Below, piece after piece: positions 2,476-52,069 of a DNA stretch of 64,000 nt (within the stretch, counting starts at the first letter, position 1; every line of letters starts with the position of its first letter). The DNA comes from Eutreptiella sp. 'Long Island Sound 2002'. Its lineage: Eukaryota > Protista > Euglenida. The notes under the pieces are model-generated. The model worked only from the letters and a program-made list of their open reading frames with translations, had not been told where the DNA came from and did no database searches. The stretch is taken from assembly GCA_964036045.1 (NCBI GenBank), contig OZ038379.1, positions 58,404,001 to 58,468,000 on the forward strand. The letters run 5' to 3'. The position numbers were made by a program, and so were the translations under genes.

Positions 2476-2649
2476 TCCATCTCTAACGGTGCAGCGGACG
2501 TCACATTCGCGGTCGGCACCGGGGTTGGGACATTCACGCTCACGGGGCAGATCGCCTTCACACTCCACATCAAAGCCGAGGCCCTAAAGAGGACGCGCTC
2601 CGAAGACTACGGCACACTCCCGTCAGAACGAGAAGGAGTGCAACACTAG
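2476..2649 (+). pseudogene. Exon-like fragment similar to the piggyBac passenger protein at 50756-51403
   Basis: After TAGTAG, reads SISNGAADVTFAVGTGVGTFTLTGQIAFTLHIKAEALKRTRSEDYGTLPSEREGVQH*. GTFTLTGQIAFTLHIKAEALKRTRS aligns ungapped with GKMSLSGTIYFTEDQKTGGLKRSIS (11/25 identical by eye). Confidence 0.45.
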
Positions 2650-4014
2650 CGTTTGACCGATTTGCCCGTCTTTGGCATTTGAAAGTCATTCGAGACATTT
2701 GGATGGGTTCCGCCCATGACTAAGGGTTGGCGTGAAACATGAGGTTGTGCAACATCGTGGGGGTGCAGTATGGTCCACAGAGGCAAGAACATTGTCAATG
2801 GGAGCAAAAAATCCCCAATTTATCCCTGCAAAGTGCGCGTTGTGCGCGCGCCGTGCCCGCGCTGTGCATGCTGGGCCCGCGCTGTGCACCCGCTGTGCAC
2901 AAACGCCCTCATGGGCCCGCACCGTTGGGGGATGCCATCCCACGCAGGCGCCCCTTCGGTTGCGACGACCAACTGAGCATGACTACCCGTCCCCCCAGTC
3001 GGTGAGCTTGCGCCAGTGGGGCTGGCGTCCCCCGCAAGCGCCCCTTCGGTGGCAACCACCGATTCATTTGGACTCCCCGTCCCCCTAGCCCGTGGGCCCC
3101 AGCCATTGGGGGCTACCATGCCCCGTAGGCGCCCCTTAGGTTGCGACCACAGACTGATCTGGAGTCCCTGTCCCCCTAGCCCATTGGCCCGCACCATTGG
3201 AGGCTACCCCTTAGGCTGCGACCACCGACTGGGCAAAACTCCCCGTCCCTCCAGCCCGTGGGCCCCCGGCTTTGGGGCCGATGTCCGACGCAGGCGCTCC
3301 TTTGGCGGTGACCACCGACTGCATAGGACTCCTCGTCCCCCCAGCCCATGGGCCGGCACCATTGGCGGCTGCCCCTTAGGTTGCAACCACCGACTAGGCA
3401 AGACTCCGCGTCCCCCAAGCCCGTGGGCCCCCGCTTTTGGTGCCGGTGTCTGACGTAGGCGCTCCGTAGGCTGCGACGGGCGACTGGGCAGGACTCCTCG
3501 TCCCCCGAGCCCATGGGCCGGACGGGGAGTTAGTCGGTGATCGTAGCCTAAGGCGCGTCTGCGGGGAATGGCATGCCCTTTTGGCGCAAGCCCACGGGCT
3601 AGGGGGACGGTGAGTCATGCCCAGTCTCTGGCCGTAGCCTAAGGAGCGACGGCGGGGATGGCAGCCCCCAATGGCCCGTGCCCACGGGCTGGAAGGACAA
3701 AGAGGACTACCCAGTCTGTCATCGCAGCCTACGGAGCGCCTACGTTGGACGGAAGCCCCAAAGGCGGGGGCCCACATGCTGGGCGGACGGGGAGTCCTGC
3801 CCAGTCGGTGGTCGCAGCCTAAGGGGCAGCCTCCAATGGCGCGGGGCCATGGGCTAGGAGGACGAGGAGTCAAGGTCAGTCCGTGGTCGCAGCCTAAGGG
3901 GCGCCTATGGCGGATGGTAGCCTCCAACAGTGCGGGCCCACGGGCCGGGGTGATGGGAAGTCTTGCCCATTTGGTAGTCGCAGCATAAGGAGCGACTGCA
4001 GGGGGATGGCACCC

Positions 4015-4170
4015 CCCCGCAGGCGGGGGCCTGGTCTTCGCGTCGATCTTATACTCGGGGAACAGCTGTTGAAGGGGCCCCAGCAGATCTGTGACCCACG
4101 CGCTTTCCTTCGCAACCGTCACAAACCGCTGGCCCGCCGCCTCTGGCCGCACCAGAGCCTCGCAGTGCAC
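4015..4170 (-). pseudogene. Isolated exon of an extended SDR / NAD-dependent epimerase (dihydroflavonol/cinnamoyl-CoA reductase-like), C-terminal part
   Basis: Pyrimidine tract plus AG precedes VHCEALVRPEAAGQRFVTVAKESAWVTDLLGPLQQLFPEYKIDAK. This fits the family pattern H..A...PEA.G.RF...L...FP.Y.I. It runs directly into satellite with no donor site. Confidence 0.62.
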
Positions 4171-6559
4171 CTTGGGTCAAGAGAGTGAAGTGCCGGAAAG
4201 GGCCCATGGGCTGGGGGGATGCGGAGTCGTGGCAAGGCAGTGGTCGGAGTCTAAGGGAGTGCCTGCGAGAGACGGCAGCCCCCCATGGTGCAGGCCCACG
4301 GGCCGGGAGCACGGGGAGTTGTTCGCAGTCGGCAGTCACAGCCTACAGAGCTCCCGCGGGGGATGGTAGCCCCCAATAGTTTGGGCTCAGGGGCTAGGGG
4401 GATTAGGGGTCGTATGCAGTCGGTGATCGCAGCCAAAGGAGCGCCTGCCAGGAATGGCAGCCCCCAACGGCGCGGACCCACGGGTTGGTTGGACGGGCAG
4501 TCCTGCCAAGTCGGTGGTCACAGCATACGGAGCGCCTGCGGAGGAGGGCAGCCCCCAACGGCCCGGGCCCGCGAGATTGCGTGTTGCCATACCCCTTAGG
4601 CGCTCCTTGGGTTGAGACGACCAACTGACTTCGAATCCCCGTCCCCTCCATACATCGGCTTGCGCATGTAGGGGCTGCCACCCCTCGCACGCGCTCGTTT
4701 GGCTCCGACCACCAACGACGTAGGAATCTCCATCCCTCCTTCCCGTGAGCCCACACCATTGGATGATGGCACCCTCTGCAGGCGCCCCTTTGGCGCCAAC
4801 CACCAACTCAGCTTGAAAACCCGTCCCCCCGGCCCGTGGGCCCGCGCCATTCAAGGCTCCCATCCCTTGCAGACGCCCCATAGGTTGTGACCCCAGAATG
4901 CTCATGACTAATAGTCCCCCGAACCCGTGATCCCGCACCATTGCGGGCTGCCATCCCCTACAGGCGCCCTTTTGGCTGCGACCACCAACTAAGCTTGAAT
5001 TTCCGTCCCCCCGGTCGTGGGCCCGCACCGTTGAGGGCTGCCATGCACCGCAAGCGCTCTTTTTGTTGCGAGCACGGACTGAACAGGACTCCCCGTCCCC
5101 CTAGGCGGTGAGCCAGCACCATTGGTGCTGCCAACAGCCACAAGTGCTCCTTTGGCTGCGACCACTGACTGAGTGGGACTCCCCGCCCCCCCCGGCCCGT
5201 GGGCCGGCGCCATTCGGGCTTGCCATCCCTTGCAGGCACCCCATAGGCCACGACAACGGAATGCGCAGTACTCCGCGTCCTGCCAGCTCCCACTGGCGTC
5301 TCCTGGTTTGCGACCACCAACTGAGCTAGAATCCCGGCCCCCCCCCCCCGTCCCATGAGCCCACACCATTGGGGGCTGCCATCCCCCGCAGGCACTCTTT
5401 TGGTTGCGACCAGTGATTGAGCAGGACTCCCCGGGCCCTCGGCCCCTGGGCCCCCGACATTGGCAGCGGCCGTGTCCCCCCCAAGCGCTGCGCAGTCGGC
5501 TATCAGGGACAAGGTAGGGCACCCCGTCCCCAGCCCATTAACTCAGGTCATTGGGGTGCCCTATAGGCTGCGACCACCGATGGTGCAGGACTCCCCGTCC
5601 CTCTAGGCGGTGAGCCCTCACCATTGGGGGCCCCCATCCCCCGCAGGCGGTTCTTGGGCTGCGACCACCGATTGAGCTAGATGCACCATCCCCCCGGCCC
5701 GTGGGCCTGCACCATTGCAGGCTGCCATCCCCTGCAGGTGCCCCATAGGCTGCGACCACGGAATGCGAAGGATTTCCCGCCCCCCAACCGGCGAGCCCGC
5801 ACCATTGCTGGCTGCCATCCCCCGCAGGCGCTCCTTTGGCTAGGACCACGGACCAAACCGGACTCCCCGTCCCCCGACACATTGGCTTGCATAATAGGGT
5901 AGTGCCGTCCCCCGCAGGCGCCCCTTTGGCGCCGCTAGGTTTTGCGTTCCCCTAGCCCATGGGCCAACACCATTCGTGGCCGCCATCCCCTGTAGGCGCA
6001 CCATAGGCTGCGACCGCGGAATGCACAAGACTCCCCTTCCCCCGAGTTGGTGATCCCGCACCATTGCAGGTTGCCATCCCCTACAGGCGCCCTTTTGGCT
6101 GCGACCACCAACTAAGCTTGAATCCCCGCCCCCCCGGCCGTGGGCCCGCACCGTTGAGGGCTGCCATGCACCGCAGGCGCTCTTTTGGTTGCCGGCACGG
6201 AATGAACAGGACTCCCCATCCTCCTAGCCAGTGAGCAAGCACCATTGGTGCTGCCATCGCCTACAAGTGCTCCTTTGGCTGCGACCACTGACTAAGCGGG
6301 ATTCCCCGCCCCCCCGGCCGGTGGGCCCGCGCCATTCGGTGTCCTTGGAGATGCCGATTTGGTCGGCGTCCCTAGGGGGTCGTGTGACCATTCCCAAGGC
6401 CTAGGCAGCCGGTACTAGGGGGCCGCGGGGTCCTGGGGGTTGGTGTTTAGCGCTAGAGCGCGCATACATCCGACACTGTTAGTACACCGCCGCTAGGGCA
6501 GTGCCCGGGCCTTGTCATAAGGAGCTTCGCACCCGGCACCCAGCCCATGGGTAGAGTTG

Positions 6560-6715
6560 GGGAGTACTCAGGGTGTGGGGAGGTGTGGTGTGGTGTGGTG
6601 GGTGGTGTGGTGTGTTGGGGTGTGGGGTGGGGTGGGATGGGATCACGTGGGGTGGGGGGTGGTATGCTGTCGCGCACTTTGCTATGTTGTGGTGTGGGGG
6701 TGCGGTGTGCTTTGC
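6560..6715. repeat. GT/G-rich low-complexity repeat ((GTGTG)n/(GTGGG)n-like)
   Basis: Seen directly in the sequence. Confidence 0.8.
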
Positions 6716-7325
6716 TGCACGAACTTGGAACTCAAGAGATCCGAGGAGGAGTGTGACCGTGCCCCTTTGCCTTCCCACTTGTGTACACGGTGGTCCCTCA
6801 TGACCTGGCATAGGGTGCAATCGCTGTCCTCGCCAAGGGGGCAGTGCCACGTGAGGGCTAGGTCTAGCCCTCGTGCCTTGCCCGACGGCACTCGGAGCAA
6901 GTGCGGGGGCTGCAAATAGTCCCTCAGCTCCAGGACGAAGCTCCGGGGTGGAGCTCAGGGTATCAGGTGCAAGTCTAGTTGAATGGCACAGACAAAAGGG
7001 TTCGTGTCCATCAACAGCAGGGGGTGTCGGGAGAGAGGCAGTAGTTGGGCACGATTACGGGGACGTGGGGCTTAAGGCACGGGTGTGTGTGTTTGTTGGG
7101 CTGGGTGAGGGTGTAGAACTCCTTCACAAGATTCTTGGTGGTGGGCTTGTTGGTGGAGAATAGTGGTTCTCCCCCAAGGGTCTTGCCCACGTGGTGGCGG
7201 AGGGTGGAATTGGGGTCTAGGCGAGCTGCGGCCTGAGCTACCTCCTCTAACGCCTCCGTGTCCTGCGCCGTCAAGTCGACTTTAATGGTCGAGACGGAGA
7301 GCGCCCTGTCCATCACGTCCTGCAA
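6690..7325 (-). pseudogene. Degraded coding-like segment of unknown product
   Basis: Protein-like frames (QDVMDRALSVSTIKVDLTAQDTEALEEV...; LLLMDTNPFVCAIQLDLHLIP*APPRSFVLELRDYLQPP...) interrupted by a frameshift and a stop; no family recognised. Confidence 0.3.
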
Positions 7326-9968
7326 GAATCCACTCAAGCCCCCCCCCCCCCCCCGGAGCGCGCCTCATCAATAGGGGAAATGTAATGTGGGACTTGCATG
7401 CCGATCTTCTTTGGAGTTCCATGCGGGGGGATCCTTTGAGCATATCGATAGACACTATGCATCTCATAATTGAACTAACAAATTGATCTCAGTCCACTGC
7501 CATGTTGAATTGCACTGCCACGCATCGAGTCATCCTAGATGCGGCAGCGGTGCCCTTGGAGGCGCTCACGGGTGTTCCTTAGCAAGGGGAGCAGCCTGTT
7601 TAAATTCTAGACCCCAACCGGGTGCGAAAACTTTTGGGGGTCTGGAGGGGGGGGGGGGGGGGAGGGGGGTCGGCCGGTCAGCCGCCAGGGTCCACAAAGG
7701 GGGGGGGGGTCAGTGGGTACCCCAACATACATACCTCAAAATGATGCCCATGACGCGCTGATTATTTTGAACGTACACAAATGGGGTAAAAAATATTTTC
7801 AGAAAAAAATTTGCCCATTGGCTTAGGCTCCCATCAGCCAAGGTCACACCCGGAGATCAAGTCAGGGGTCAAAAAGGTTTCTGTGTTTTTCAAACATTCT
7901 TAAATTCTCCATAAAATTCTGAGCATTTTGAGTATAGACACACAGGATGAAAAAAAATTACCCTCTCAGGAAGGGCAAAAAAACTTTCAGCGCCTTCAGC
8001 GCTGACCCTTTCCCCCAAAATCTCAAATTGGAGAAACACGGGTTCGAAAATTTTGGGGAGGTCTGGAGGGGGGGGCGTCTGGAAATTGAACAGGCCACCC
8101 CCTGTTCCTTAGGGAGGCCAGAGTCTCTCTAGGGTTCAGCAGCAGCCTGCTGGCCAGGGGCACCTCATTGATGTGCCTCTGAGGGTCCCAGCTGCACCTC
8201 ACGCCGCTGCCCCGGGGTACATCGGGGGTTTCGTGTGGCCTAGGTGTGCGGGCGGCCCTGCACCCTAAGATCCCCAACGCCTTTCTCTTCTAGGCCTCCT
8301 CTGGGGCCATGAGGGACCGTTTCAGGGCCTCCACCCCCTCCTAGCCCCCCCCACCAATGGCCTGCGCATGGCGGAGGAACCTGCGTACAGTGGGCTGCAG
8401 GGCTGCCTTGGGGTGGGTCCTTTCTAAAGGGTGTTGCCAGAGGCGGTACAACCTGTAGTTGTGAGCATGGACCATGCCACGGTCCTGCGCCCTGTCGTAC
8501 ATGGCTTGCTAGAGGCACCACAGCCAGTTGATTGGCTGGTCCTCCGGGGGGTTGGGCCTACGGGCGTGCAGCGTGTGCCGGTAGTCCGCCTCATCCGCCG
8601 GGGTAAGGGTTACCAGGCACAAGTGGAGCTCCGGGGTGTGAGCCACCGCATCTGGGTGGGGCTTTTTGTCCCGGGCCACCAGGTGGGTGACAACCACCAA
8701 GAGGGGGAGATGGTGGTCGGAGAATAGGGCAGGGGAGGTTGGCATGGCAAGCCACCGCGCAAATTGTGCACACAACTGCGGCCACTGCTGCCACCACTGC
8801 TCTGTTTGGGTATGCAGCTCTGGTTGCCACACGGTGTGCCCACTACAATCTACAAACGCGCAACCCCCCCTCCCCGTTGGTTCCGGTATTCGACCAGTGG
8901 GATGTGGATGTCCGGGACTGGGTCGCATTGATGTTCATTGAGCACGAATGTTCAGGTCTAAATTGCTGTTGTGCAAAGCTCGACTCTGGAGGCAGTGGGT
9001 GGGTTACGCGACATGTGTTGGAGTGACAAAACTTTGGGAACAAAAATCCTGCCGGCCTATGTGCAACCCGAATCAATGGCTCTCCCATGGGGGGCCTAAT
9101 TCTTGTTTATTTGTCTGGCATATTTGAAGTCCCCGCGGAACTCCAAGTACACCAAGGGCGGGCGGTGCAGGAAACTCAACACGACATGTCATGGAATGGC
9201 GCTTTGCACAAGACAGTGTGCCCCGTGCACAAGACATGGGGCATGAAAGCCTGGCGCAAACCCCGTCCGGCTTGTCAAACTCGGGCGGCAAGATAGACAA
9301 TTCCTTGATGCTGGCAAACCCCTCTGCAGGCCTGTCGTCCCCATGTTTGGCAACACTGTTTCGTTTGTCCCGGGAGCTGCGGGGCTGGGCGGCTTGAGCG
9401 TAACCCACGTCGTCATAGCGGATGTCCAGAAGGTTCAGCCCCCTCATGTTGGGGCTGGACATGGGGACCTTCGGGCATGAGCTGCTGGAGGTGAGTGTGG
9501 CGCTGCTGCGACGCCGCTTCATGCTGCTGCAGGAGGACTGCAGCATGTCCGACCACATGGCCCTAAGCCCAAGAGAAGTGGGGTCAAGATTGCTGGGTTG
9601 GCTGCAAGTGCATGATGGGGGAACGTTCTTGGGATGAGGGCAGGGCGCACAGTTAGGGGCTGGGGCTGTTTGGATGGATGGATACGGGGACTCGCAGAGA
9701 CGGCAGTGGTGGAGGGATCGCTGGCCCTGAGTTAGGCAGCCTGGGAGGTGGATCAGCCCTGCGGGTGTTTTGGACAGCTGAAGCAAGAGGAATGTTTGCA
9801 GCAATCATAGTTATCGCGGATACAAATTGAGGTGTATTGTGACCCTCCTCCATGTGAACAGTTGCCGCGGTGCAAAAAAAAACCAGAAAAGACAGCAGCG
9901 ATTTTGGGGTGCATGTGGTCAAATGAGCAAACCTGTGAATCAGTTAGAATTGGAGCCTGACGAGGACC

Positions 9969-20000: not shown

Positions 20001-23000
20001 GGGGGAGAAATCAGAAGTGGCCCACCTATGGGCAAAGTGGCTATGTCACCCCCTGCCGTCTCGGGGATCCCCACCGCTTCAGAGCGGGGGGGAAAATCAG
20101 AAGTGGCCCACAAGTGGGCAAAGTGGCTACATCACCCCTGCCGTCTCGGGGATCCCCACCGCTTCAGAGCGGGGGGGAAAATCAGAAGTGGCCCACTTGT
20201 GGGCAAAGTGGCTATGTCACCCCCTGCCGTCTCCGGGATCCCCACCGCTTCGAAGCGGGGGGGGAAATCAGAAGTGGCCCACTTGTGGGCAAAGTGGCTA
20301 TGTCACCCCTGCCGTCTCGGGGATCCCCACCACTTCAGAGCGGGGGGCAAAATCAGAAGTGGCCCACAAGTGGGCAGAGTGGCTACGTCACCCCTGCCGT
20401 CTCGGGGATCCCCACCGCTTCGGAGCGGGGAGGAAACTCAGAAGTAGCCCACAAGTGGGCAAAGTGGCTACGTCACCCCTGCCGTCTCGGGGATCCCCAC
20501 CGCTTCAGAGCGGGGGGGGAAAATCAGAAGTGGCCCACAAGTGGGCAAAGTGGCTACGTCACCCCTGCCGCCTCGGGGATCCCCACCGCTTGAGAGCGGG
20601 GGGGAAAATCAGAAGTGGCCCACTTGTGGGCAAAGTGGCTATGTCACCCCTGCCGTCTCGGGGATCCCCACCGCTTCAGAGCGGGGGGGGAAATCAGAAG
20701 TGGCCCACTTGTAGGCAAAGTGGCTACGTCACTCCTGCCGTCTCGGGGATCCCCACCGCTTCAGAGCGGGGGGGGAAATCAGAAGTGGCCCACTTGTGGG
20801 CAAAGTGGCTACGTCACCCCTGCCGTCTCGGGGATCCCCACCGCTTCAGAGCGCGGGGGGAAATCAGAAGTGGCCCACTTGTGGGCAAAGTGGCTACGTC
20901 ACTCCTGCCGTCTCGGGGATCCCCACCGCTTCAGAGCGGGGCATAAATCAGAAGTGGCCCACTTGTGGGCAAAGTGGCTACGTCACCCCTGCCGTCTCGG
21001 GGATCCCCACCGCTTCAGAGCGGGGGGGAGAATCAGAAGTGGCCCACAAGTGGGCAAAGTGGCTACGTCACCGCTGCTGTCTCGGGGATCCCCGGCGCTT
21101 CAGAGCGGGGGGGAAAATCAGAAGTGGCCCACTTGTAGGCAAAGTGGCTACGTCACCCCTGCCGTCTCTAGGATCCCCACCGCTTCAGAGCGGGGGGGGC
21201 GAAATCAGAAGTGGCCCACAAGTGGGCAAAGAGGCTACGTCACCCCTGCCGTCTCGGGGATCCCCACCGCTTCACAGTGGGGGGCAAAATCAGAAGTGGC
21301 CCACCGATTTCCCCCCCCGCTCTGAAGCGGTGGGGATCCCCGAGACGGCAGGGGTGACGTAGCCACTTTGCCCACAAGTGGGCCACTTCTGATTTTCCCC
21401 CCCCGCTTTGAAGCGGTGGGGATCCCCGAGACGGCAGGGGTGACGTAGCCACTTTGCCCACTTGTGGGCCACTTCTGATTTTCCCCCCCGCTCTGAAGCG
21501 GTGGGGATCCCGAGACGGCAGGGGTGGCGTAGCCACTTTGCCCACAAGTGGGCCACTTCTGATTTATGCCCCGCTCTGAAGCGGTGGGGATCCCCGAGAC
21601 GGCAGGAGTGACGTAGCCACTTTGCCCACAAGTGGGCCACTTCTGATTTCCCCCCCCGCTCTGAAGCGGTGGGGATCCCCGAGACGGCAGGGGTGACGTA
21701 GCCACTTTGCCCACTTGTGGGCCACTTCTGATTCCCCCCCCGCTCTGCAGCGGTGGGGATCCCCGAGACGGCAGGGGGTGACATAGCCACTTTGCCCATA
21801 GGTGGGCCACTTCTGATTTCCCCCCCCCCGCTCTGCAGCGGTGGGGATCCCCGAGACGGCAGGGGGTGACATAGCCACTTTGCCCACAAGTGGGCCACTT
21901 CTGATTTTCCCCCCCGCTCTGAAGCGGTGGGGATCCCCGAGACGGCAGGGGTGACGTAGCCACTTTGCCCACTTGTGGGCCACTTCTGATTTCCCCCCCC
22001 CGCTCTGCAGCGGTGGGGATCCCCGAGACGGCAGGGGTGACATAGCCACTTTGCCCACAAGTGGGCCACTTCTGATTTTGCCCCCCGCTCTGAAGCGGTG
22101 GGGATCCCCGAGACGGCAGGGGCGACGTAGCCACTTTGCCCACAAGTGGGCCACTTCTGATTTCCCCCCCCGCTCTGAAGCGGTGGGGATCCCCGAGACG
22201 GCAGGAGTGACGTAGCCACTTTGCCCACAAGTGGGCCACTTCTGATTTCCCCCCCGCTCTGAAGCGGTGGGGATCCCCGAGACGGCAGGGGTGACGTAGC
22301 CACTTTGCCCACTTGTGGGCCACTTCTGATTTCCCCCCCCCGCTCTGCAGCGGTGGGGATCCCCGAGACGGCAGGGGGTGACATAGCCACTTTGCCCATA
22401 GGTGGGCCACTTCTGATTTCCCCCCCCCCGCTCTGCAGCGGTGGGGATCCCCGAGACGGCAGGGGGTGACATAGCCACTTTGCCCACAAGTGGGCCACTT
22501 CTGATTTTCCCCCCGCTCTGAAGCGGTGGGGATCCCCGAGACGGCAGGGGTGACGTAGCCACTTTGCCCACTTGTGGGCCACTTCTGATTTCCCCCCCCG
22601 CTCTGCAGCGGTGGGGATCCCCGAGACGGCAGGGGTGACATAGCCACTTTGCCCACAAGTGGGCCACTTCTGATTTTGCCCCCCGCTCTGAAGCGGTGGG
22701 GATCCCCGAGACGGCAGGGGCGACGTAGCCACTTTGCCCACAAGTGGGCCACTTCTGATTTCCCCCCCGCTCTGAAGCGGTGGGGATCCCCGAGACGGCA
22801 GGAGTGACGTAGCCACTTTGCCCACAAGTGGGCCACTTCTGATTTCCCCCCCGCTCTGAAGCGGTGGGGATCCCCGAGACGGCAGGGGTGACGTAGCCAC
22901 TTTGCCCACTTGTGGGCCACTTCTGATTTCCCCCCCCCGCTCTGCAGCGGTGGGGATCCCCGAGACGGCAGGGGGTGACATAGCCACTTTGCCCATAGGT

Positions 23001-24643
23001 GGGCCACTTCTGATTTCCCCCCCCCGCTCTGCAGCGGTGGGGATCCCCGAGACGGCAGGGGGTGACATAGCCACTTTGCCCACAAGTGGGCCACTTCTGA
23101 TTTTCCCCCCCGCTCTGAAGCGGTGGGGATCCCCGAGACGGCAGGGGTGACGTAGCCACTTTGCCCACTTGTGGGCCACTTCTGATTTCCCCCCCCCGCT
23201 CTGCAGCGGTGGGGATCCCCGAGACGGCAGGGGTGACATAGCCACTTTGCCCACTTGTGGGCCACTTCTGATTTTGCCCCCCGCTCTGAAGCGGTGGGGA
23301 TCCCCGAGACGGCAGGGGCGACGTAGCCACTTTGCCCACAAGTGGGCCACTTCTGATTTCCCCCCCGCTCTGAAGCGGTGGGGATCCCCGAGACGGCAGG
23401 GGTGACGTAGCCACTTTGCCCACAAGTGGGCCACTTCTGATTTCCCCCCCCGCTCTGAAGCGGTGGGGATCCCCGAGACGGCAGGAGTGACGTAGCCACT
23501 TTGCCCACTTGTGGGCCACTTCTTATTTTCCCCCCCGCTCTCAAGCGGTGGGGATCCCCGAGACGGCAGGGGTGACGTAGCCACTTTGCCCACAAGTGGG
23601 CCACTTCTGATTTTCCCCCCCGCTCTGAAGCGGTGGGGATCCCCGAGATGGCAGGGGTGACGTAGCCACTTTGCCCACAAGTGGGCCACTTCTGATTTTC
23701 CCCCCCGCTCTGAAGCGGTGGGGATCCCCGAGACGGCAGGGGTGACGTAGCCACTCTGCCCACTTGTGGGCCACTTCTGATTTTGCTCCCCGCTCTGAAG
23801 TGGTGGGGATCCCCGAGACGGCAGGGTTGACATAGCCACTTTGCCCACAAGTGGGCCACTTCTGATTTCCCCCCCGCTTCGGAGCGGTGGGGATCCCGGA
23901 GACGGCAGGGGTGACATAGCCACTTTGCCCACAAGTGGGCCACTTCTGATTTCTCCCCGCGCTCTGAAGCGGTGGGGATCCCCGAGACGGCAGGGGTGAC
24001 GTAGCCACTTTGCCCACTTGTGGGCCACTTCTGATTTTGCCCCCCGCTCTGCAGCGGTGGGGATCCCCGAGACGGCAGGGGTGACGTAGCCACTTTGCCC
24101 ACAAGTGGGCCACTTCTGATTTTCCCCCCCGCTCTGAAGCGGTGGGGATCCCGAGACGGCAGGGGTGACGTAGCCACTTTGCCCACAAGTGGGCCACTTC
24201 TGATTTTGCCCCCCGCTCTGCAGCGGTGGGGATCCCCGAGACGGCAGGGGTGACATAGCCACTTTGCCCACAAGTGGGCCACTTCTGATTTCCCCCCCCC
24301 GCTCTGCAGCGGTGGGGATCCCCGAGACGGCAGGGGTGACGTAGCCACTTTGCCCACAAGTGGGCTACTTCTGATTTCCCCCCCCGCTCTGAAGCGGTGG
24401 GGATCCCCGAGACGGCAGGGGTGACATAGCCACTTTGCCCACAAGTGGGCCACTTCTGATTTTCCCCCCCGCTCCGCAGCGGTGGGGATCCCTGAGACGG
24501 CAGGGGTGACATAGCCACTTTGCCCACAAGTGGGCCACTTCTGATTTGCCCCCCCGCTCTGAAGCGGTGGGGATCCCCGAGACGGCAGGGGGTGACATAG
24601 CCACTTTGCCCATAGGTGGGCCACTTCTGATTTTTCCCCCCGC
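20001..24643. repeat. ~85-bp hairpin-rich satellite, forward to 21304 then reverse
   Basis: Unit GAAATCAGAAGTGGCCCACTTGTGGGCAAAGTGGCTACGTCACCCCTGCCGTCTCGGGGATCCCCACCGCTTCAGAGCGGGGGGG. Orientation flips at ...GGCCCAC|CGATTTCCCC (~21305). Confidence 0.95.
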
Positions 24644-25087: not shown

Positions 25088-28000
25088 CAGACCCATTCAT
25101 GGCATGTACCATCCGCTACCCCACACTGGGAACTAACACCCCAAAACCACAAAAGAGGGCGGGTGGGGGATGCATCATGCGGTACCTCAAAAAGGGCGGA
25201 GGGCCTGACCCGGGGATGCCTGATGCGGTACCTGGCACAGGCTCAGTGCACTTCTCAGTGGCCCGTCATGCGTGACACAGTGTCGTTGCATTGGCACACA
25301 ACGTCCCCAACAGACCTTCGTCGGAACACCAAAGCTCTGCCTGGCCACTGCGAATTGCCTGTGCCTTTATTCCTATTGCTGTGCCTTTATTCCTATCGCT
25401 GCTAACACCCTTTGTCTCCTGTGCCCCCACAGCCAGCTTCCTGCCATTACCTCTCATGCCCCTTTCTGCCGCCTAGTCCCACTTTTTGCCATGTGCCTTC
25501 CAAAACGTACACCACCGAGACCCTGTTGCCCGTGGCAAAAACAATCACAATCTGTAAAGAGCAACCAATTTACAAACATGTACCCAGCAAAAAGTCTGAG
25601 GCCGCTGGCTCCAAATGAATCAACACGCAAAAGAGGTCTTAAGTGAACGTGCTTCCTTCTGTGCAGCAAGTGCCTGAGCAGCACTGGCTCCCATTGAATT
25701 ATGAGCGAGCACGGGGGCGGGGGGGGGGGCAACCCCTCGGGGGGAGAAAATCAGAAGTGGCCCACCTATGGGCAAAGTGGCTATGTCACCCCCTGCCGTC
25801 TCGGGGATCCCCACCGCTTCAGAGCGGGGGGGAAAATCAGAAGTGGCCCACAAGTGGGCAAAGTGGCTACATCACCCCTGCCGTCTCGGGGATCCCCACC
25901 GCTTCAGAGCGGGGGGAAAATCAGAAGTGGCCCACTTGTGGGCAAAGTGGCTATGTCACCCCCTGCCGTCTCCGGGATCCCCACCGCTTCGAAGCGGGGG
26001 GGGAAATCAGAAGTGGCCCACTTGTGGGCAAAGTGGCTATGTCACCCCTGCCGTCTCGGGGATCCCCACCACTTCAGAGCGGGGGCAAAATCAGAAGTGG
26101 CCCACAAGTGGGCAGAGTGGCTACGTCACCCCTGCCGTCTCGGGGATCCCCACCGCTTCGGAGCGGGGAGGAAACTCAGAAGTAGCCCACAAGTGGGCAA
26201 AGTGGCTACGTCACCCCTGCCGTCTCGGGGATCCCCACCGCTTCAGAGCGGGGGGGGAAAATCAGAAGTGGCCCACAAGTGGGCAAAGTGGCTACGTCAC
26301 CCCTGCCGCCTCGGGGATCCCCACCGCTTGAGAGCGGGGGGGAAAATCAGAAGTGGCCCACTTGTGGGCAAAGTGGCTATGTCACCCCTGCCGTCTCGGG
26401 GATCCCCACCGCTTCAGAGCGGGGGGGGAAATCAGAAGTGGCCCACTTGTAGGCAAAGTGGCTACGTCACTCCTGCCGTCTCGGGGATCCCCACCGCTTC
26501 AGAGCGGGGGGGGAAATCAGAAGTGGCCCCACTTGTGGGCAAAGTGGCTACGTCACCCCTGCCGTCTCGGGATCCCCACCGCTTCAGAGCGCGGGGGGAA
26601 ATCAGAAGTGGCCCACTTGTGGGCAAAGTGGCTACGTCACTCCTGCCGTCTCGGGGATCCCCACCGCTTCAGAGCGGGGCATAAATCAGAAGTGGCCCAC
26701 TTGTGGGCAAAGTGGCTACGTCACCCCTGCCGTCTCGGGATCCCCACCGCTTCAGAGCGGGGGGGAGAATCAGAAGTGGCCCACAAGTGGGCAAAGTGGC
26801 TACGTCACCGCTGCTGTCTCGGGGATCCCCGGCGCTTCAGAGCGGGGGGGGAAAATCAGAAGTGGCCCACTTGTAGGCAAAGTGGCTACGTCACCCCTGC
26901 CGTCTCTAGGATCCCCACCGCTTCAGAGCGGGGGGGGCGAAATCAGAAGTGGCCCACAAGTGGGCAAAGAGGCTACGTCACCCCTGCCGTCTCGGGGATC
27001 CCCACCGCTTCAACAGTGGGGGGCAAAATCAGAAGTGGCCCACCGATTTCCCCCCCCGCTCTGAAGCGGTGGGGATCCCGAGACGGCAGGGGTGACGTAG
27101 CCACTTTGCCACAAGTGGGCCACTTCTGATTTTCCCCCCCGCTTTGAAGCGGTGGGGATCCCCGAGACGGCAGGGGTGACGTAGCCACTTTGCCCACTTG
27201 TGGGCCACTTCTGATTTTCCCCCCCGCTCTGAAGCGGTGGGGATCCCCGAGACGGCAGGGGTGGCGTAGCCACTTTGCCCACAAGTGGGCCACTTCTGAT
27301 TTATGCCCCGCTCTGAAGCGGTGGGGATCCCCGAGACGGCAGGAGTGACGTAGCCACTTTGCCCACAAGTGGGCCACTTCTGATTTCCCCCCCCGCTCTG
27401 AAGCGGTGGGGATCCCCGAGACGGCAGGGGTGACGTAGCCACTTTGCCCACTTGTGGGCCACTTCTGATTCCCCCCCCCGCTCTGCAGCGGTGGGGATCC
27501 CCGAGACGGCAGGGGGTGACATAGCCACTTTGCCCATAGGTGGGCCACTTCTGATTTCCCCCCCCCCGCTCTGCAGCGGTGGGGATCCCCGAGACGGCAG
27601 GGGGTGACATAGCCACTTTGCCCACAAGTGGGCCACTTCTGATTTTCCCCCCCCGCTCTGAAGCGGTGGGGATCCCCGAGACGGCAGGGGTGACGTAGCC
27701 ACTTTGCCCACTTGTGGGCCACTTCTGATTTCCCCCCCCCGCTCTGCAGCGGTGGGGATCCCCGAGACGGCAGGGGTGACATAGCCACTTTGCCCACAAG
27801 TGGGCCACTTCTGATTTTGCCCCCCGCTCTGAAGCGGTGGGGATCCCCGAGACGGCAGGGGCGACGTAGCCACTTTGCCCACAAGTGGGCCACTTCTGAT
27901 TTCCCCCCCCGCTCTGAAGCGGTGGGGATCCCCGAGACGGCAGGAGTGACGTAGCCACTTTGCCCACAAGTGGGCCACTTCTGATTTCCCCCCCGCTCTG

Positions 28001-30634
28001 AAGCGGTGGGGATCCCCGAGACGGCAGGGGTGACGTAGCCACTTTGCCCACTTGTGGGCCACTTCTGATTTCCCCCCCCCGCTCTGCAGCGGTGGGGATC
28101 CCCGAGACGGCAGGGGGTGACATAGCCACTTTGCCCATAGGTGGGCCACTTCTGATTTCCCCCCCCCCGCTCTGCAGCGGTGGGGATCCCCGAGACGGCA
28201 GGGGGTGACATAGCCACTTTGCCCACAAGTGGGCCACTTCTGATTTTCCCCCCCGCTCTGAAGCGGTGGGGATCCCCGAGACGGCAGGGGTGACGTAGCC
28301 ACTTTGCCCACTTGTGGGCCACTTCTGATTTCCCCCCCCCGCTCTGCAGCGGTGGGGATCCCCGAGACGGCAGGGGTGACATAGCCACTTTGCCCACAAG
28401 TGGGCCACTTCTGATTTTGCCCCCCGCTCTGAAGCGGTGGGGATCCCCGAGACGGCAGGGGCGACGTAGCCACTTTGCCCACAAGTGGGCCACTTCTGAT
28501 TTCCCCCCCCGCTCTGAAGCGGTGGGGATCCCCGAGACGGCAGGAGTGACGTAGCCACTTTGCCCACAAGTGGGCCACTTCTGATTTCCCCCCCGCTCTG
28601 AAGCGGTGGGGATCCCCGAGACGGCAGGGGTGACGTAGCCACTTTGCCCACTTGTGGGCCACTTCTGATTTCCCCCCCCCGCTCTGCAGCGGTGGGGATC
28701 CCCGAGACGGCAGGGGGTGACATAGCCACTTTGCCCATAGGTGGGCCACTTCTGATTTCCCCCCCCCGCTCTGCAGCGGTGGGGATCCCCGAGACGGCAG
28801 GGGGTGACATAGCCACTTTGCCCACAAGTGGGCCACTTCTGATTTTCCCCCCCGCTCTGAAGCGGTGGGGATCCCCGAGACGGCAGGGGTGACGTAGCCA
28901 CTTTGCCCACTTGTGGGCCACTTCTGATTTCCCCCCCCCGCTCTGCAGCGGTGGGGATCCCCGAGACGGCAGGGGTGACATAGCCACTTTGCCCACTTGT
29001 GGGCCACTTCTGATTTTGCCCCCCGCTCTGAAGCGGTGGGGATCCCCGAGACGGCAGGGGCGACGTAGCCACTTTGCCCACAAGTGGGCCACTTCTGATT
29101 TCCCCCCCCGCTCTGAAGCGGTGGGGATCCCCGAGACGGCAGGGGTGACGTAGCCACTTTGCCCACAAGTGGGCCACTTCTGATTTCCCCCCCCGCTCTG
29201 AAGCGGTGGGGATCCCCGAGACGGCAGGAGTGACGTAGCCACTTTGCCCACTTGTGGGCCACTTCTTATTTTCCCCCCCGCTCTCAAGCGGTGGGGATCC
29301 CCGAGACGGCAGGGGTGACGTAGCCACTTTGCCCACAAGTGGGCCACTTCTGATTTTCCCCCCCGCTCTGAAGCGGTGGGGATCCCCGAGATGGCAGGGG
29401 TGACGTAGCCACTTTGCCCACAAGTGGGCCACTTCTGATTTTCCCCCCCGCTCTGAAGCGGTGGGGATCCCCGAGACGGCAGGGGTGACGTAGCCACTCT
29501 GCCCACTTGTGGGCCACTTCTGATTTTGCTCCCCGCTCTGAAGTGGTGGGGATCCCCGAGACGGCAGGGTTGACATAGCCACTTTGCCCACAAGTGGGCC
29601 ACTTCTGATTTCCCCCCCCGCTTCGGAGCGGTGGGGATCCCGGAGACGGCAGGGGTGACATAGCCACTTTGCCCACAAGTGGGCCACTTCTGATTTCTCC
29701 CCGCGCTCTGAAGCGGTGGGGATCCCCGAGACGGCAGGGGTGACGTAGCCACTTTGCCCACTTGTGGGCCACTTCTGATTTTGCCCCCCGCTCTGCAGCG
29801 GTGGGGATCCCCGAGACGGCAGGGGTGACGTAGCCACTTTGCCCACAAGTGGGCCACTTCTGATTTTCCCCCCCGCTCTGAAGCGGTGGGGATCCCCGAG
29901 ACGGCAGGGGTGACGTAGCCACTTTGCCCACAAGTGGGCCACTTCTGATTTTGCCCCCCGCTCTGCAGCGGTGGGGATCCCCGAGACGGCAGGGGTGACA
30001 TAGCCACTTTGCCCACAAGTGGGCCACTTCTGATTTCCCCCCCCCGCTCTGCAGCGGTGGGGATCCCCGAGACGGCAGGGGTGACGTAGCCACTTTGCCC
30101 ACAAGTGGGCTACTTCTGATTTCCCCCCCCGCTCTGAAGCGGTGGGGATCCCCGAGACGGCAGGGGTGACATAGCCACTTTGCCCACAAGTGGGCCACTT
30201 CTGATTTTCCCCCCCGCTCCGCAGCGGTGGGGATCCCTGAGACGGCAGGGGTGACATAGCCACTTTGCCCACAAGTGGGCCACTTCTGATTTGCCCCCCC
30301 GCTCTGAAGCGGTGGGGATCCCCGAGACGGCAGGGGGTGACATAGCCACTTTGCCCATAGGTGGGCCACTTCTGATTTTTCCCCCCGCTCCCCCCCCCCC
30401 CCCCAAACTGCCCCTCCCAACCCCGAGGGGTTGCCCCCCCCCCCGCCCCCCGTGCTCGCTCATAATTCAATGGGAGCCAGTGCTGCTCAGGCACTTGCTG
30501 CACAGAAGGAAGCACGTTCACTTAAGACCTCTTTTGCGTGTTGATTCATTTGGAGCCAGCGGCCTCAGACTTTTTGCTGGGTACATGTTTGTAAATTGGT
30601 TGCTCTTTACAGATTGTGATTGTTTTTGCCACGG
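25088..30634. repeat. Direct near-identical copy of 19349-24887 across the gap (offset ~5.74 kb), probably an unmerged contig overlap
   Basis: Same unique flank, same satellite variant order and same fold junction (~27044). Many differences are 1-bp indels in homopolymers. Confidence 0.85.
25738..30388. repeat. Second copy of the ~85-bp satellite, forward then reverse
   Basis: Same unit; orientation flip at ~27044. Confidence 0.95.
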
Positions 30635-48278: not shown

Positions 48279-48957
48279 CATGCATTTCTTCTTTTTAGTA
48301 AAATTGGAAAAGATTTTGTGGTAATTCGTGTACAAAAACATTGTCATGCCGTGTAATGGTTTTTGTGGCAAGTCGTGTCCATAAAAATCGTCAGGTCGTG
48401 TAGGTTTATTTTTTTTGCGTTAAACGCGAGACCAAAAAAATCGTGAAATCGTGTAATTTATTTTTCTTTGCGGTAATGTGCGAAACAGGTCTACATGTCT
48501 GACCGGGAAAAAAAAATCACCTAGCATGACAATTTTTGTTGTTGCATGCATTTACAGCAAAAATTCAATACACGAATTGAGACATACATATTCCTTTGGC
48601 TACCATACGCGAATATTTTCACAACCGGTCCACCGGTCTTCGTTAACTCACCGTTTCGACTAGGCAAAATCACCAACTGTTCAGTTGAGACCGTTTCGCG
48701 CCACTTTAGCTTTCTGTAGCGAACCGGTTAGTTCGGGGAGACCGGTCGGACCGGTCCGACCGGTCTTTGCAAACTGAACGGACCGGACCATTTTAGCACA
48801 CTTTAGCACACTTTGGAGCACTTGGTGATGCGTGTGTAGTGTGTGTGTCCGCATGTGTGTGTTGTGTGTGTGCGTGTGCTGTGTTGTGCGTGTTCACACC
48901 TTTGCACAGGCATTGCAATGCATGGGAGTCAATCCTCACAAGACATCTATTCATGGT

Positions 48958-50319
48958 TCATTCATGATGGTCCGCAAAGCATTCAACGTGTAGATAGCAC
49001 CCACATGCTTTGCACTTGTATCGGGTGGTGCCCATCCCACAATGTACACAAAAGCCCCGCTTCCCAACCACTATTGGTACATGCTTGTCCACCACCTGAG
49101 TTTGCCTTGCCGGAAACATGTATCTCATCAACCTCCATTGCCAGTCAAACATTGTTTCACCCCCCGGACTAAGGCGCAACGCTTGGCATGACGTAAATGC
49201 ATTTGTTGCCGCTATCCTTAACACCATCCCCCCAAGTGCCTTCCACCATGATTGAAACCGGTGCTCTTCCCGGTGTTGTAAGCACATTTGGTTAAACGTA
49301 TCCACCCCCGGGGCAAACCTACGGTAGTTGGCAATTATCCCCGGTAGGTGGTATCGTCCACTTCGGTGTGGGAGCGAACCTCCGGTTAAGCAATTGGTTA
49401 GTAGTGGTACCACCTTTGCCGGCTTGCGCCCCACTTTGGGGTTTTTGTATACCGAGAGTGCATACCGATGTTCCTTGTGCACCACCGTGTTCACATCCCC
49501 CGGGTCTAATCCAACGTTCCCATCTTGCACCAAAGCACTTGTGGAAGTGAGCATCAAGAACGGACGCTCTTGTGCACTTAGCATCGCCGCCGCATCATGA
49601 GACCCAAAGAATGAATCCGCCACAAGCACCTTTCCGGGTGGAGTCACATCATTCCAAAGTTGCACAATCTCAAACGCATTGTAGTGGCCTGCAAACCGGC
49701 TCCGGGACTCTGGACCCACACGAGGGGCTGCACCACGGTACAAATACACATGCCAAATGTAATGGCTTTGTGCGTCGCACAACGCGTACAGTTTCACACC
49801 GGTGCTGTGAGGCTTGCGCGGTATGAACTGGCGGATCACGAACAACCCCTTGTGGGGGACCACGGTCTCATCCCCGCACACCATGTCACCTAGTTCCCAT
49901 CCGCCTTGCCAGTGCATCGTGCACAACTCAATCAACGCATCCGCATCCGGGTCCGCAAGTCGCTGCAGCACATAAAACTGTCGCCTGCTAGGAAACAGTT
50001 CCGCCATGTATGCATTGTAGTGCATACTCTCTTTGTCCCACACATCATCTATTCTGCGCGGCTGCAGCATGCCCAAGCCAACTCGAAAGAGCACGTACCG
50101 CGGAAGAAGGTCCACAAGGTCTAACCGGTTGGCCTCTTCCAAACACAGCGTCATGGCCTCCAAAATTGGCCGGAACATAAAGTTCCAGACGGCAACGGGG
50201 GTCTTGCCATCCTCGGTGCCCTCCAAGAGGCTGCGCCCTTTGCGGAGTTCATCTCCAAAATCCCATTGGGCCTCTAGGGGGGCCAGGGGTCTTGGTTCCC
50301 ATGGTGTAGCAGCAGGCAT
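48958..50319 (-). CDS. piggyBac-like transposase (DDE_Tnp_1_7 type), 453 aa from the first ATG
   Basis: Uninterrupted ORF with CGDETVV, IPRKPHSTGVKLYALCD, VADSFFGS, YRRFAPGVDTFNQ and a C-terminal CxxC...CxxC...H/C domain. ATG at 50319 follows TTTTTTTTCAG|GC. Confidence 0.93.
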   Translation of the reverse strand: MPAATPWEPRPLAPLEAQWDFGDELRKGRSLLEGTEDGKTPVAVWNFMFRPILEAMTLCLEEANRLDLVDLLPRYVLFRVGLGMLQPRRIDDVWDKESMHYNAYMAELFPSRRQFYVLQRLADPDADALIELCTMHWQGGWELGDMVCGDETVVPHKGLFVIRQFIPRKPHSTGVKLYALCDAQSHYIWHVYLYRGAAPRVGPESRSRFAGHYNAFEIVQLWNDVTPPGKVLVADSFFGSHDAAAMLSAQERPFLMLTSTSALVQDGNVGLDPGDVNTVVHKEHRYALSVYKNPKVGRKPAKVVPLLTNCLTGGSLPHRSGRYHLPGIIANYRRFAPGVDTFNQMCLQHREEHRFQSWWKALGGMVLRIAATNAFTSCQALRLSPGGETMFDWQWRLMRYMFPARQTQVVDKHVPIVVGKRGFCVHCGMGTTRYKCKACGCYLHVECFADHHE

Positions 50320-50371
50320 GCCTGAAAAAAAAACAGAATACAAGCTTTTGCTGACCAGTCTTGGCAAACTA

Positions 50372-50570
50372 CCCTAAACCGTTCAGACCGCTTCACTTTA
50401 GATCACTTTGTCCACAGACCGGTTGGACCGGTCTTTGCAAACTACTCTAAACCGTTCGGACCGGTCCACTTTAGCTCACTTTGTCCAGAGACCGGTCAGA
50501 CCGGTCTTTGCAAACTACTCTAAACCGTTCGGACCGCTTCACTTTAGCACACTTTAGTACACTTTAGACT
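50372..50570. repeat. 73-bp internal tandem repeat of the piggyBac element, upstream of the transposase
   Basis: TAAACCGTTC at 50375, 50448 and 50521; each unit has the core GACCGGT(N)nGACCGGTCTTTGCAAAC and ACTTTAGCAC-like motifs. Confidence 0.85.
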
Positions 50571-50755
50571 TTCTTTGCTCCCAAACCAAACACGCAGCAG
50601 AAATCATGGAATCATGCAATCCTGGAATCATGTCGCTGGTGTCCCATCAAGCACATGTCTGGCACACGTCTGGCACACCGGCCACACAGGACCGAAACAG
50701 TTCGTCGATAAAATCAAAAGGGAATAGCAAATAGCAAAAGCAAATAGAAAATGAG

Positions 50756-51403
50756 TTACTCATCCTCATTATCCTCATTATCCTTCTTCTCTTCCCCGGT
50801 CTTCTTGTTGCGGGCCTCGAGCTGCAGCGCGAGTCGCGCCTGTTGTGCGGCGAAGGCCGGGGTGATTTTCATCCCCGGAATCCCGGTAGCAGCAGCAGCG
50901 GAAGCCGCCTGCAGCTGAAGTGCCTGGGTGGAGGGCTCCTGCAGAAAAAGGAAGTAAAGTGGTTTCAACCGAACGGACCGGTACACTTCGTGACACTTCG
51001 TTCAAGGACCGGTCGGACCGGTCTTTGCAAACTGTCGTAAACCGTTCGGACCGGTACACTTTAGCACACTTCACACGAAGACCGGTCGGACCGGTCGTTG
51101 CAAACTGTCGTAAACCGTTCGGACCGGTCCACTTTAGCACACGGTGACGAAGTCAAGCTCGCCCTTGCTGATGCTGCGCTTCAAGCCCCCGGTCTTCTGG
51201 TCCTCCGTGAAGTAGATTGTCCCGGATAGGGACATTTTACCGGACGCCTGCGACTCGCACGTGCCGGTGTAGCGGCCGCCGTGCGAGCCCTTCAGCAGCA
51301 GCACCACCCGGTCTCCGGCCCGGACCTTCTTGAAGGCCGTGGGCACGGGCGTCTCGGCGTCCTTCACGCCGGGGATCTTCGTGCCGGGGCCTGAAATCGG
51401 CAT
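50756..51403 (-). CDS. Two-exon passenger gene inside the piggyBac element; 147-aa protein with a predicted SH3/KOW-like beta-barrel and an Ala-rich, charged tail
   Basis: Exons 51143-51403 and 50756-50938 splice in phase 0 (ACC|gtgtgc...ttctgcag|GAG): ...KKVRAGDRVVLLLKGSHGGRYTGTC...KGELDFVT|EPSTQ...EDNEDE*. Strong G/C third positions. The start is uncertain because an AG acceptor also exists at 51391-51392. Confidence 0.75.
50939..51142. repeat. Intron of the passenger gene composed of the same 73-bp repeat
   Basis: TAAACCGTTC at 51038 and 51111; the GT donor lies inside the GTGTGCTAAAGT repeat motif. Confidence 0.85.
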
Positions 51404-52069
51404 TAAAGAAGACTAAGCAACAAAGCAGGGAAGAGCCGTCTGACCGGTCCTGTGAAAAGGCAGCAGGAAGTAGGGGACCAGGAGCGAGGTTCGGAAGACC
51501 GGTCTGACCGGTCTGCGTGAAACTGTTTGAACCGATCTATTTTCATGCTAATGGTGCATCCCACCCATCATGCATCGTTGAAACACCCAAGAGGACATGG
51601 GAAGCAAAGTCTGTGTATGTGTGTGTGGTTTGTGCATGGTGTGTGGTGGCGTGCATGCTGCAACGAGCGCGCAAAGGTAGGTTTGGGAGGCAAGTGTAAC
51701 AAAGTGCTCCAAAGTGTACCGAAGTGGTCCGGTCCGTTCGGTTTGCAAAGACCGGTCCCACCGGTCTCTGAAACTGGTCTTACTGTTTTTCTCTAAAATA
51801 CTATTGAGTCTAAGAAAACCACCAAAACCATCATTTCCTCCACGTTCAAAAACCCTTGACCCAATCCTTTGCCAGAAAGTGATAATTTTCCCCACAAGAC
51901 CAGACCGGTCCTCCGTCCGGTCTGGTAGCCAAAGGAATATATACTAAGTATATCTGTATGGGCATGTCGTGTGCACCTTTCGGGCAACCGTTAGGGTTGT
52001 GCACCTTGATGCGCAAGACCCACATAACAAGCAAAAGGTGTCTCGCTCTGCTATTTGATGGTTAGGCTA

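Follow-up and report, generated by a model that had tools for sequence, protein, structure and literature searches.

The piggyBac elements are among the best-studied cut-and-paste transposons of eukaryotes and have been widely used as gene-transfer tools. To our knowledge, they have been described as single-gene elements and are regarded as a one-protein system, and we know of no piggyBac transposase elsewhere that does not act alone. Two-gene DNA transposons encode an accessory protein in addition to the transposase, with the Myb-like protein of PIF/Harbinger and TnpA of En/Spm-CACTA serving as examples. A full-text literature search returned neither a piggyBac element in Euglena nor an accessory protein or second open reading frame in any piggyBac element, a result that constitutes weak evidence. 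The locus described here lies in a 64,000-nucleotide stretch of the genome of Eutreptiella sp. 'Long Island Sound 2002' (contig OZ038379.1, positions 58,404,001 to 58,468,000; hereafter the window), where a piggyBac-like element of 3,353 bp occupies positions 48588-51940 on the minus strand. This element is an internally deleted copy of a 5.1-kb transposon carrying two genes, ORF1 and a transposase gene. In common with the piggyBac superfamily, it has a DDE_Tnp_1_7 transposase, whose Cys/His-rich end may correspond to the C-terminal Cys-rich domain of that superfamily, as well as short inverted repeats at its termini, flanks of 4 bp consisting of A and T only and many internally deleted derivatives. 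Nonetheless, it differs in being flanked by ATAT rather than TTAA, in the presence of a second, spliced and conserved gene of about 600 codons, and in the arrays of 73-bp ACCGGT repeats found in its subterminal regions, intergenic spacer and two introns. The segment at 50756-51403 of the window is probably what is left of that second gene after a private 1.76-kb deletion in one member of a many-copy piggyBac-like family, the intact ORF1 being a five-exon gene under selection that encodes a protein with a predicted Sm/LSm-type barrel.

The ends of the element are perfect terminal inverted repeats of 14-18 nt which are conserved among copies. The left repeat, ATATTCCTTTGGCTACCA, is located at 48588-48605 (plus strand) and forms the inverted-repeat pair I9 with the right repeat at 51923-51940 (plus strand); the same left end occurs in six of the seven copies compared, and the right repeat is likewise conserved across copies. 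No TTAA target-site duplication was detected at the ends of these seven copies. ATAT was found at both ends in six of them, either as flank or as part of the repeat, with the flanks of copy L064 being different, and the initial ATAT of the left repeat may be a target duplication. ATAT sites are seen at 48584-48591 and 51937-51944 of the window and likewise at the ends of copies L061-L066, and a few copies have 3-5 additional bases common to both flanks. The transposase gene extends over 48958-50319 on the minus strand, with an ATG at 50319, 453 codons and a stop at 48958-48960. Its frame is intact, ends in the Cys/His-rich tail and is present as the same open frame in the full-length copies. 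The open frame as a whole comprises 471 codons, of which residues 149-391 match Pfam DDE_Tnp_1_7 (PF13843) with an E value of 3.1e-21 and 76.5 bits against a cut-off of 22.4, while the sole match of the tail is a weak one to a C1-like zinc module (E 0.017, below cut-off). The spacer between ORF1 and the transposase gene (50304-50625) is made up of 73-bp ACCGGT-type repeats belonging to families D1 and D2, and ACCGGT motifs also occur in the region upstream of ORF1 (51404-51922, minus strand). The 73-bp unit, which contains paired ACCGGT palindromes, has been located at 50304-50625, 50894-51215, 48739-48824 and 51691-51777 of the window and at 6190-5966 and 5109-4868 of the full-length copy L061, the introns concerned being introns 1 and 4 of ORF1. 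Repeats of an ACCGGTC type are also seen in the intron after exon 1 in a subfamily of 38% identity, as read-through translation in P0038 and P0040. Introns filled with such repeats seem to be preferred sites of internal deletion.

The initial annotation had placed at this site two GC3-rich pieces, lying between the terminal inverted repeats, upstream of the transposase gene and co-oriented with it; both frames were recovered on the minus strand in this arrangement, and the quoted peptide strings are present in the first frame. This frame runs from an ATG at 51403 to 51134 and encodes 89 aa, while the second extends from 50941 to 50756, with an AG at 50942/50941, and comprises 60 codons and a stop (50756-50758). 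The same annotation had joined both pieces into a clean two-exon gene of 147 aa, a model that is not supported for the native gene, given that its supposed donor, ACC/GTGTGC at 51142/51143, is itself the junction of a 1,758-bp deletion and that the native protein has about 598 aa encoded in five exons. A DNA search of the organism's own genome (2.28 Gb) gave 115 matches, and all copies other than that of the window lose homology exactly at 51142, the exon-1 DNA being present in the same copies but some 1.76 kb further on. Six full-length copies were fetched together with their flanks, and each contains 1,758 additional bases between window positions 51142 and 51143; with the exception of this one gap, the window element is colinear with them at 98.4-99.6% identity. 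The full element measures 5,141 bp, as in L061 (contig C12:62072000-62081999), where it occupies positions 2488-7628. An 80-nt probe spanning the junction matched end to end solely at the window, with 40 of 326 candidates scored and the others matching one half, so that the junction is unique to the window copy among the scored candidates.

The deletion, with 1 nt of microhomology at the junction, leads from codon 88 of ORF1 to the inside of intron 4, and three remnants can be recognized around it, all on the minus strand. The head of exon 1 (51143-51403) retains codons 1-87 and is matched in tblastn by residues 1-87 of P0076, a 595-aa database protein described below, at 97.7% identity. It is followed by what remains of intron 4 (50942-51142), consisting of 73-bp repeats and shortened by 38 nt at its start, where the natural GC donor has been lost, and by the last exon, exon 5 (50756-50941), which corresponds to residues 535-595 of P0076 at 98% identity. 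Compared with P0076, 447 of 595 residues are missing, and the intron that had been taken as the sole one has lost its natural donor. The window copy has an intact transposase but is almost certainly without a working ORF1 protein, and it would depend on ORF1 supplied by other copies. The case also carries a warning for annotation, namely that internal deletions in multi-exon transposon genes can give rise to neat, in-frame "mini-genes".

It could be argued that the short form is itself a product, with the GT at the junction acting as a donor and the resulting protein of 146-147 aa acting as a regulator, for instance as a truncated competitor of full-length ORF1, a role for which KP of the P element provides a precedent. 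The junction, ACC/GTGTGCT, would indeed splice in frame with exon 5, an outcome with a chance of 1 in 3, and three genomic matches of 85% identity (C15:13295866, C1229:10079 and C1845:1359) also stop near residue 88 and have frames of 93 aa, which suggests that similar truncations may recur. This explanation is nevertheless very unlikely, considering that the junction is private to the window copy among the scored candidates, that the natural GC donor of intron 4 has been deleted and that no transcript of the short form is known. In addition, the coding sequence breaks off at residue 87, ahead of the fifth strand (residues 90-97) of the barrel predicted for the N-terminal domain, and a stable fold of the short form is doubtful in the absence of this strand.

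In full-length copies, ORF1 is an in-frame coding sequence of about 598 codons in five exons, which the exon model places on the minus strand of L061 at 7091-6191, 5965-5712, 5640-5437, 5364-5110 and 4867-4685. GT-AG borders are found in three of the introns, and the exception, with GC-AG, is intron 4, whose donor, CAG/GCATGC, lies 6 nt upstream of a GTGTGC sequence and was set by a transcript-derived protein. This protein, UniRef100_A0A7S4G8P1 (P0076), is a transcriptome-derived "uncharacterized protein" of 595 aa in the 90%-identity cluster of the exon-1 open reading frame, and it constitutes the transcript evidence for ORF1 as a single database entry. It is colinear with all five exons and reads across all four exon junctions, with tblastn against L061 returning four colinear blocks. 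It thereby bears out the five-exon pattern, and its match to the window is limited to residues 1-87 and 535-595. The entry is labelled Eutreptiella gymnastica and is about 98% identical to the element copies; the label may reflect cross-contamination of samples with material of another euglenid or, alternatively, an element that is shared or has moved between genera. The exons were searched and folded one by one, with P0076 used as a stand-in for the full-length protein. From the N-terminus, the protein comprises a predicted Sm/LSm-like barrel (residues 23-99, approximately), an acidic run with 29 Asp/Glu in 44 residues, a Lys/Arg-rich stretch containing a Phe-Phe pair (17 Lys/Arg in the 52 residues that follow the acidic run), and a helical region; a segment rich in Pro comes next, ahead of a long charged region encoded in exons 3-4 that is probably a coiled coil, and an acidic tail closes the protein.

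The order of the two genes allows for a further reading, in which they are one gene whose ORF1 exons are spliced onto the transposase exon, yielding a transposase with an extended N-terminus. ORF1 and the transposase are co-oriented, the Pfam match of the latter begins only at profile position 114, and a pyrimidine tract followed by AG (50320-50342, minus strand) provides a strong acceptor 2 nt before the transposase ATG, being a candidate 3' splice site or spliced-leader acceptor. However, P0076 extends no further than the stop codon of ORF1, and the transposase has its own ATG right after the acceptor. A fusion by splicing was rejected because the only GT near the ORF1 stop joins the acceptor at 50321 out of frame, and the single-gene reading is considered highly improbable.

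The 24-nt spliced-leader sequence of Euglena occurs in 3,309 exact copies in the genome as compared to none in the control, which indicates a euglenid with trans-splicing. In addition to the tract in front of the transposase, a pyrimidine tract with AG is seen at 51404-51440, 9 nt before the ATG of ORF1. Both tracts are possible trans-splice acceptors and would allow for polycistronic expression; with a spliced-leader acceptor in front of each ATG, the expression of both genes from a single element could be accounted for.

The conservation of ORF1 has been followed both within the young subfamily to which these copies belong and across more distant ones. When residues 1-100 were used as a protein query against the genome, at least 150 matches were obtained, ranging from 100% down to 54% identity; many of these are open frames of 300-310 aa, and several diverged ones still measure 272-335 aa. 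In a neutral simulation considering substitutions only, the frame was open in 0.3% of cases at 62% amino acid identity and in 0.06% at 46%. Selection was assessed on 20 independent full-length exon-1 copies of the young subfamily, for which 27-28% of changes are expected to be synonymous at the transition bias of the introns. Over the first 100 codons, variants shared between copies comprised 10 synonymous and 1 non-synonymous changes, and singletons comprised 8 and 5, giving the N-terminal domain a total of 18 synonymous to 6 non-synonymous against the 28% synonymous expected. The shared variants of the whole of exon 1 amounted to 16 synonymous and 6 non-synonymous (binomial p 1e-5). When the exons were taken together, shared variants did not differ significantly from singletons (Fisher p 0.43), with the signal being found in exon 1 and the N-terminal domain relative to the mutational expectation. 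Judging by these sequence comparisons, ORF1 is a real gene under purifying selection and not a set of chance open reading frames, in agreement with the selection that the earlier reading had proposed to look for across copies.

A similar picture emerges from the diverged subfamilies, in which, at 38-45% identity, neither the architecture nor the end of exon 1 has changed. In the P0038-type subfamily, ORF1 is colinear over 315 residues at 38% identity, and the parts follow in the same order, with the barrel succeeded by the acidic run, the Lys/Arg-rich stretch with its invariant Phe-Phe and the helical region. The latter keeps the pattern Leu-Glu-x-Tyr-Gly ... His-Val-x-x-Cys-Leu-Arg, and exon 1 ends at Tyr-Ala-Gly, as it does in the family of the window. 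A comparison of exon 5 with a diverged subfamily gave 33% identity over 60 aa, which is not significant. The Phe-Phe pair (residues 176-184, approximately, of the first sequence of the 22-sequence alignment A1) is present in all subfamilies, with Lys/Arg on its N-terminal side and acidic or polar residues on its C-terminal side, within a fast-changing charged linker, and it may be a short docking motif.

The second gene is also tied to the transposase. All six of the full-length copies contain both ORF1 and the downstream transposase, and in subfamilies of approximately 80-84% identity the open reading frames P0008 and P0010 are deletion fusions of ORF1 with a piggyBac transposase. P0057 is a further ORF1-transposase fusion, in this case from the subfamily at 40%, and its tail shows 69% identity with residues 226-257 of the transposase. 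Such fusions in diverged subfamilies, together with the six full-length copies, indicate that the association between ORF1 and the transposase holds across the family, and the proposal that homologues sit beside piggyBac transposases is upheld to the extent of these copies and fusions. The frames P0008, P0010, P0039 and P0057 of the public collections, in which pieces of ORF1 have become joined either with transposase sequence or with the final exon, show that many different internal deletions have occurred in the family.

A captured host gene, carried as a passenger without a role in transposition, had been put forward in the initial annotation as an alternative to a second gene dedicated to the element. 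The base composition would be in keeping with such an origin, with GC3 reaching 0.91 in the exon-1 piece of ORF1 and 0.70 in the last-exon piece, as compared to 0.59 in the transposase (48961-50319), in an element whose overall GC is 0.53; the contrast between exon 1 and the transposase could reflect a different origin or different expression. Nonetheless, every full-length copy examined has ORF1, as do subfamilies at 38-45% identity, where neither the architecture nor the intron position differs, and the gene has been under purifying selection within the transposon lineage. It is not a single-copy gene absent from other copies of the element. When two large protein collections were searched, all of the matches accepted belonged to the ORF1 family, down to 31-45% identity, and no relative outside the transposon family was found among 1.84 billion representatives. 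Capture as a passenger has a very low probability, and a second gene dedicated to the element agrees with its presence in every full-length copy examined, its retention in subfamilies down to 38% identity and the purifying selection acting on it. Matches to P0026 and P0030, giant proteins with bacterial-type Pfam domains, and to P0034, a 351-aa repeat protein, were judged to be spurious, the P0026 match consisting of a tandem repeat of about 53 aa at 30-37% identity summed over many copies. Elsewhere in the window, two blocks at 20001-24000 and 26001-30000 have 63-65% GC and near-identical composition and skew in surroundings of about 52% GC, and a further GC-rich repeat or gene is probably present there in duplicate.

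The structure of the N-terminal domain has been approached by prediction. With alignment A1, which is shallow and made up of 22 sequences from family members only, AlphaFold2 modelled residues 11-100 at pLDDT 87-95, as a short helical turn followed by strands at 32-37, 44-53, 56-67, 74-86 and 90-97. The domain was unusable when predicted from a single sequence (pLDDT 42.6), and for the helical region of ORF1 the alignment did not raise the pLDDT to 52. Among PDB entries, the best Foldseek matches were the LSm domain of LSM14, SmF, Lsm5 and archaeal Sm, with E values of 4e-4 to 2e-3 and TM scores, normalized by target, of up to 0.79. VIA-align, a comparison independent of Foldseek and covering 48,161 chains, returned nearly exclusively Sm/LSm proteins in its top 30 (Lsm, SmF, Naa38, EDC3, Gemin6/7 and Hfq), the best at Z 9.3 with an rmsd of 1.8 Å over 68 of 69 residues, a score little above the best Z of 7-8 typical of unrelated small models. 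Other libraries were less informative, with the ESM Atlas giving scores of at most 0.79 for the N-terminal domain and no usable match for residues 205-400, and the viral fold library BFVD returning uninformative phage barrels.

When compared to Sm/LSm proteins (SmF, Lsm1-8, SmAP, LSM14/Scd6, EDC3 and Naa38), the predicted domain shares the short helical turn and five strongly bent strands, and it superposes at Z 8-9.3 and 1.8-2.4 Å over 62-73 residues, which is nearly the whole of the target chains. At the sequence level, the resemblance is lost. The domain has no Sm1 or Sm2 motif, and no Pfam family was hit at E up to 1-10 when the exon of the window, exon 1 in its full length, 11 diverged members and the 595-aa protein were scanned; Pfam scans of every ORF1 exon, the 11 diverged N-terminal domains and the 595-aa protein yielded low-complexity noise only. 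Its conserved polar residues are located in other loops (a Lys-Gly-Ser-His-Gly loop and a Thr-Glu-Asp loop), and the barrel heads a transposon-encoded protein of about 600 aa. The N-terminal domain of ORF1 can therefore be described as a Sm-type fold by prediction, which cannot be placed within the LSM sequence families since no sequence family matches it.

The initial annotation had favoured a five-strand SH3-type barrel ending in ISKGELDFV. A small barrel of the broad SH3-like class is indeed predicted, but Sm/LSm proteins are its best matches and the fifth strand lies beyond the break, outside the piece on which that description was based. The domain has in common with SH3, KOW and Tudor barrels that it belongs to the broad class of small five-stranded barrels, and its Gly-Asp-x-Val-Val recalls the KOW motif. 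However, phmmer and profile searches against PDB sequences gave nothing significant, the nominal best being PsaE (E 0.52) and the KOW protein uL24 (E 0.82), and in VIA-align the scores of SH3-like and eIF5A-type barrels are clearly lower than those of Sm/LSm proteins, with the C-terminal domain of biotin ligase at Z 6.5 and eIF5A at Z 5.8. No Tudor, chromo or PWWP chain appeared in the VIA-align top 50. Matches to myoglobin and HSP90 among PDB sequences were due to the acidic linker and were discarded.

Proteins of the LSm14/Scd6/EDC3 class combine a divergent LSm domain at the N-terminus with a downstream FDF/FFD motif, through which DDX6-type helicases are bound. ORF1 could accordingly be imagined to act at the RNA level, as a look-alike of these proteins docking on the mRNP, decapping or DDX6-type machinery of the host and protecting or controlling the mRNAs of the element. 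The LSm domain of LSM14 is the top Foldseek match, the LSm domains of EDC3 and Tral reach Z 6.4-7.7, the barrel sits at the extreme N-terminus as in this class, and the Phe-Phe pair is invariant in a charged linker across all subfamilies of A1. Against this, canonical Sm/Lsm ring subunits score equally well or better, the LSM14, FDF and LSM profiles of Pfam remain without a match at E up to 10, the Phe-Phe pair differs from the FDF consensus, and a DNA transposon has no obvious need of such a factor. A role of this kind seems unlikely, though less so than the passenger, single-gene and short-form explanations.

A role in transposition itself can be compared with that of the accessory proteins of two-gene DNA transposons. 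As in Harbinger and CACTA elements, the second protein is encoded by the element and selected alongside the transposase, and the abundant subterminal repeats could serve as its binding sites; by analogy, the basic, NLS-like stretch of ORF1 could carry the transposase into the nucleus. It differs from those accessory proteins in having no match to Myb/SANT or another DNA-binding family, and the transposase superfamily is a different one, so that the analogy is confined to the role. On this basis, it is tentatively proposed that ORF1 may be a nuclear, oligomerizing adaptor required for transposition, in the manner of the second proteins of PIF/Harbinger or CACTA. The basic stretch would serve in nuclear import and the charged helical segment in oligomerization, while the barrel, together with the helical region, would make contact with a partner, most likely the abundant 73-bp ACCGGT repeats or the transposase, or else a host factor. 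Chromatin targeting, RNA targeting and anti-silencing, as suggested in the initial annotation, would be other possible roles.

An ORF1 with a predicted Sm/LSm-type barrel is unusual for a piggyBac-type transposon, and a large, young family with a second gene that is spliced, under selection and predicted to encode such a barrel would represent a different way to run a piggyBac element. It is conceivable, if still doubtful, that the piggyBac-like elements of euglenids are two-component transposons, in which ORF1 is a scaffold with an LSm fold and no sequence relatives outside the family that is required for mobility, either as a Harbinger-style partner for import and end binding or as a mimic of LSm14/EDC3-type mRNP scaffolds controlling mRNAs processed by the spliced leader. 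If true, this would provide a new context for the Sm fold, and in an organism that uses spliced-leader trans-splicing a transposon might encode its own cofactor or a module for interaction with the host.
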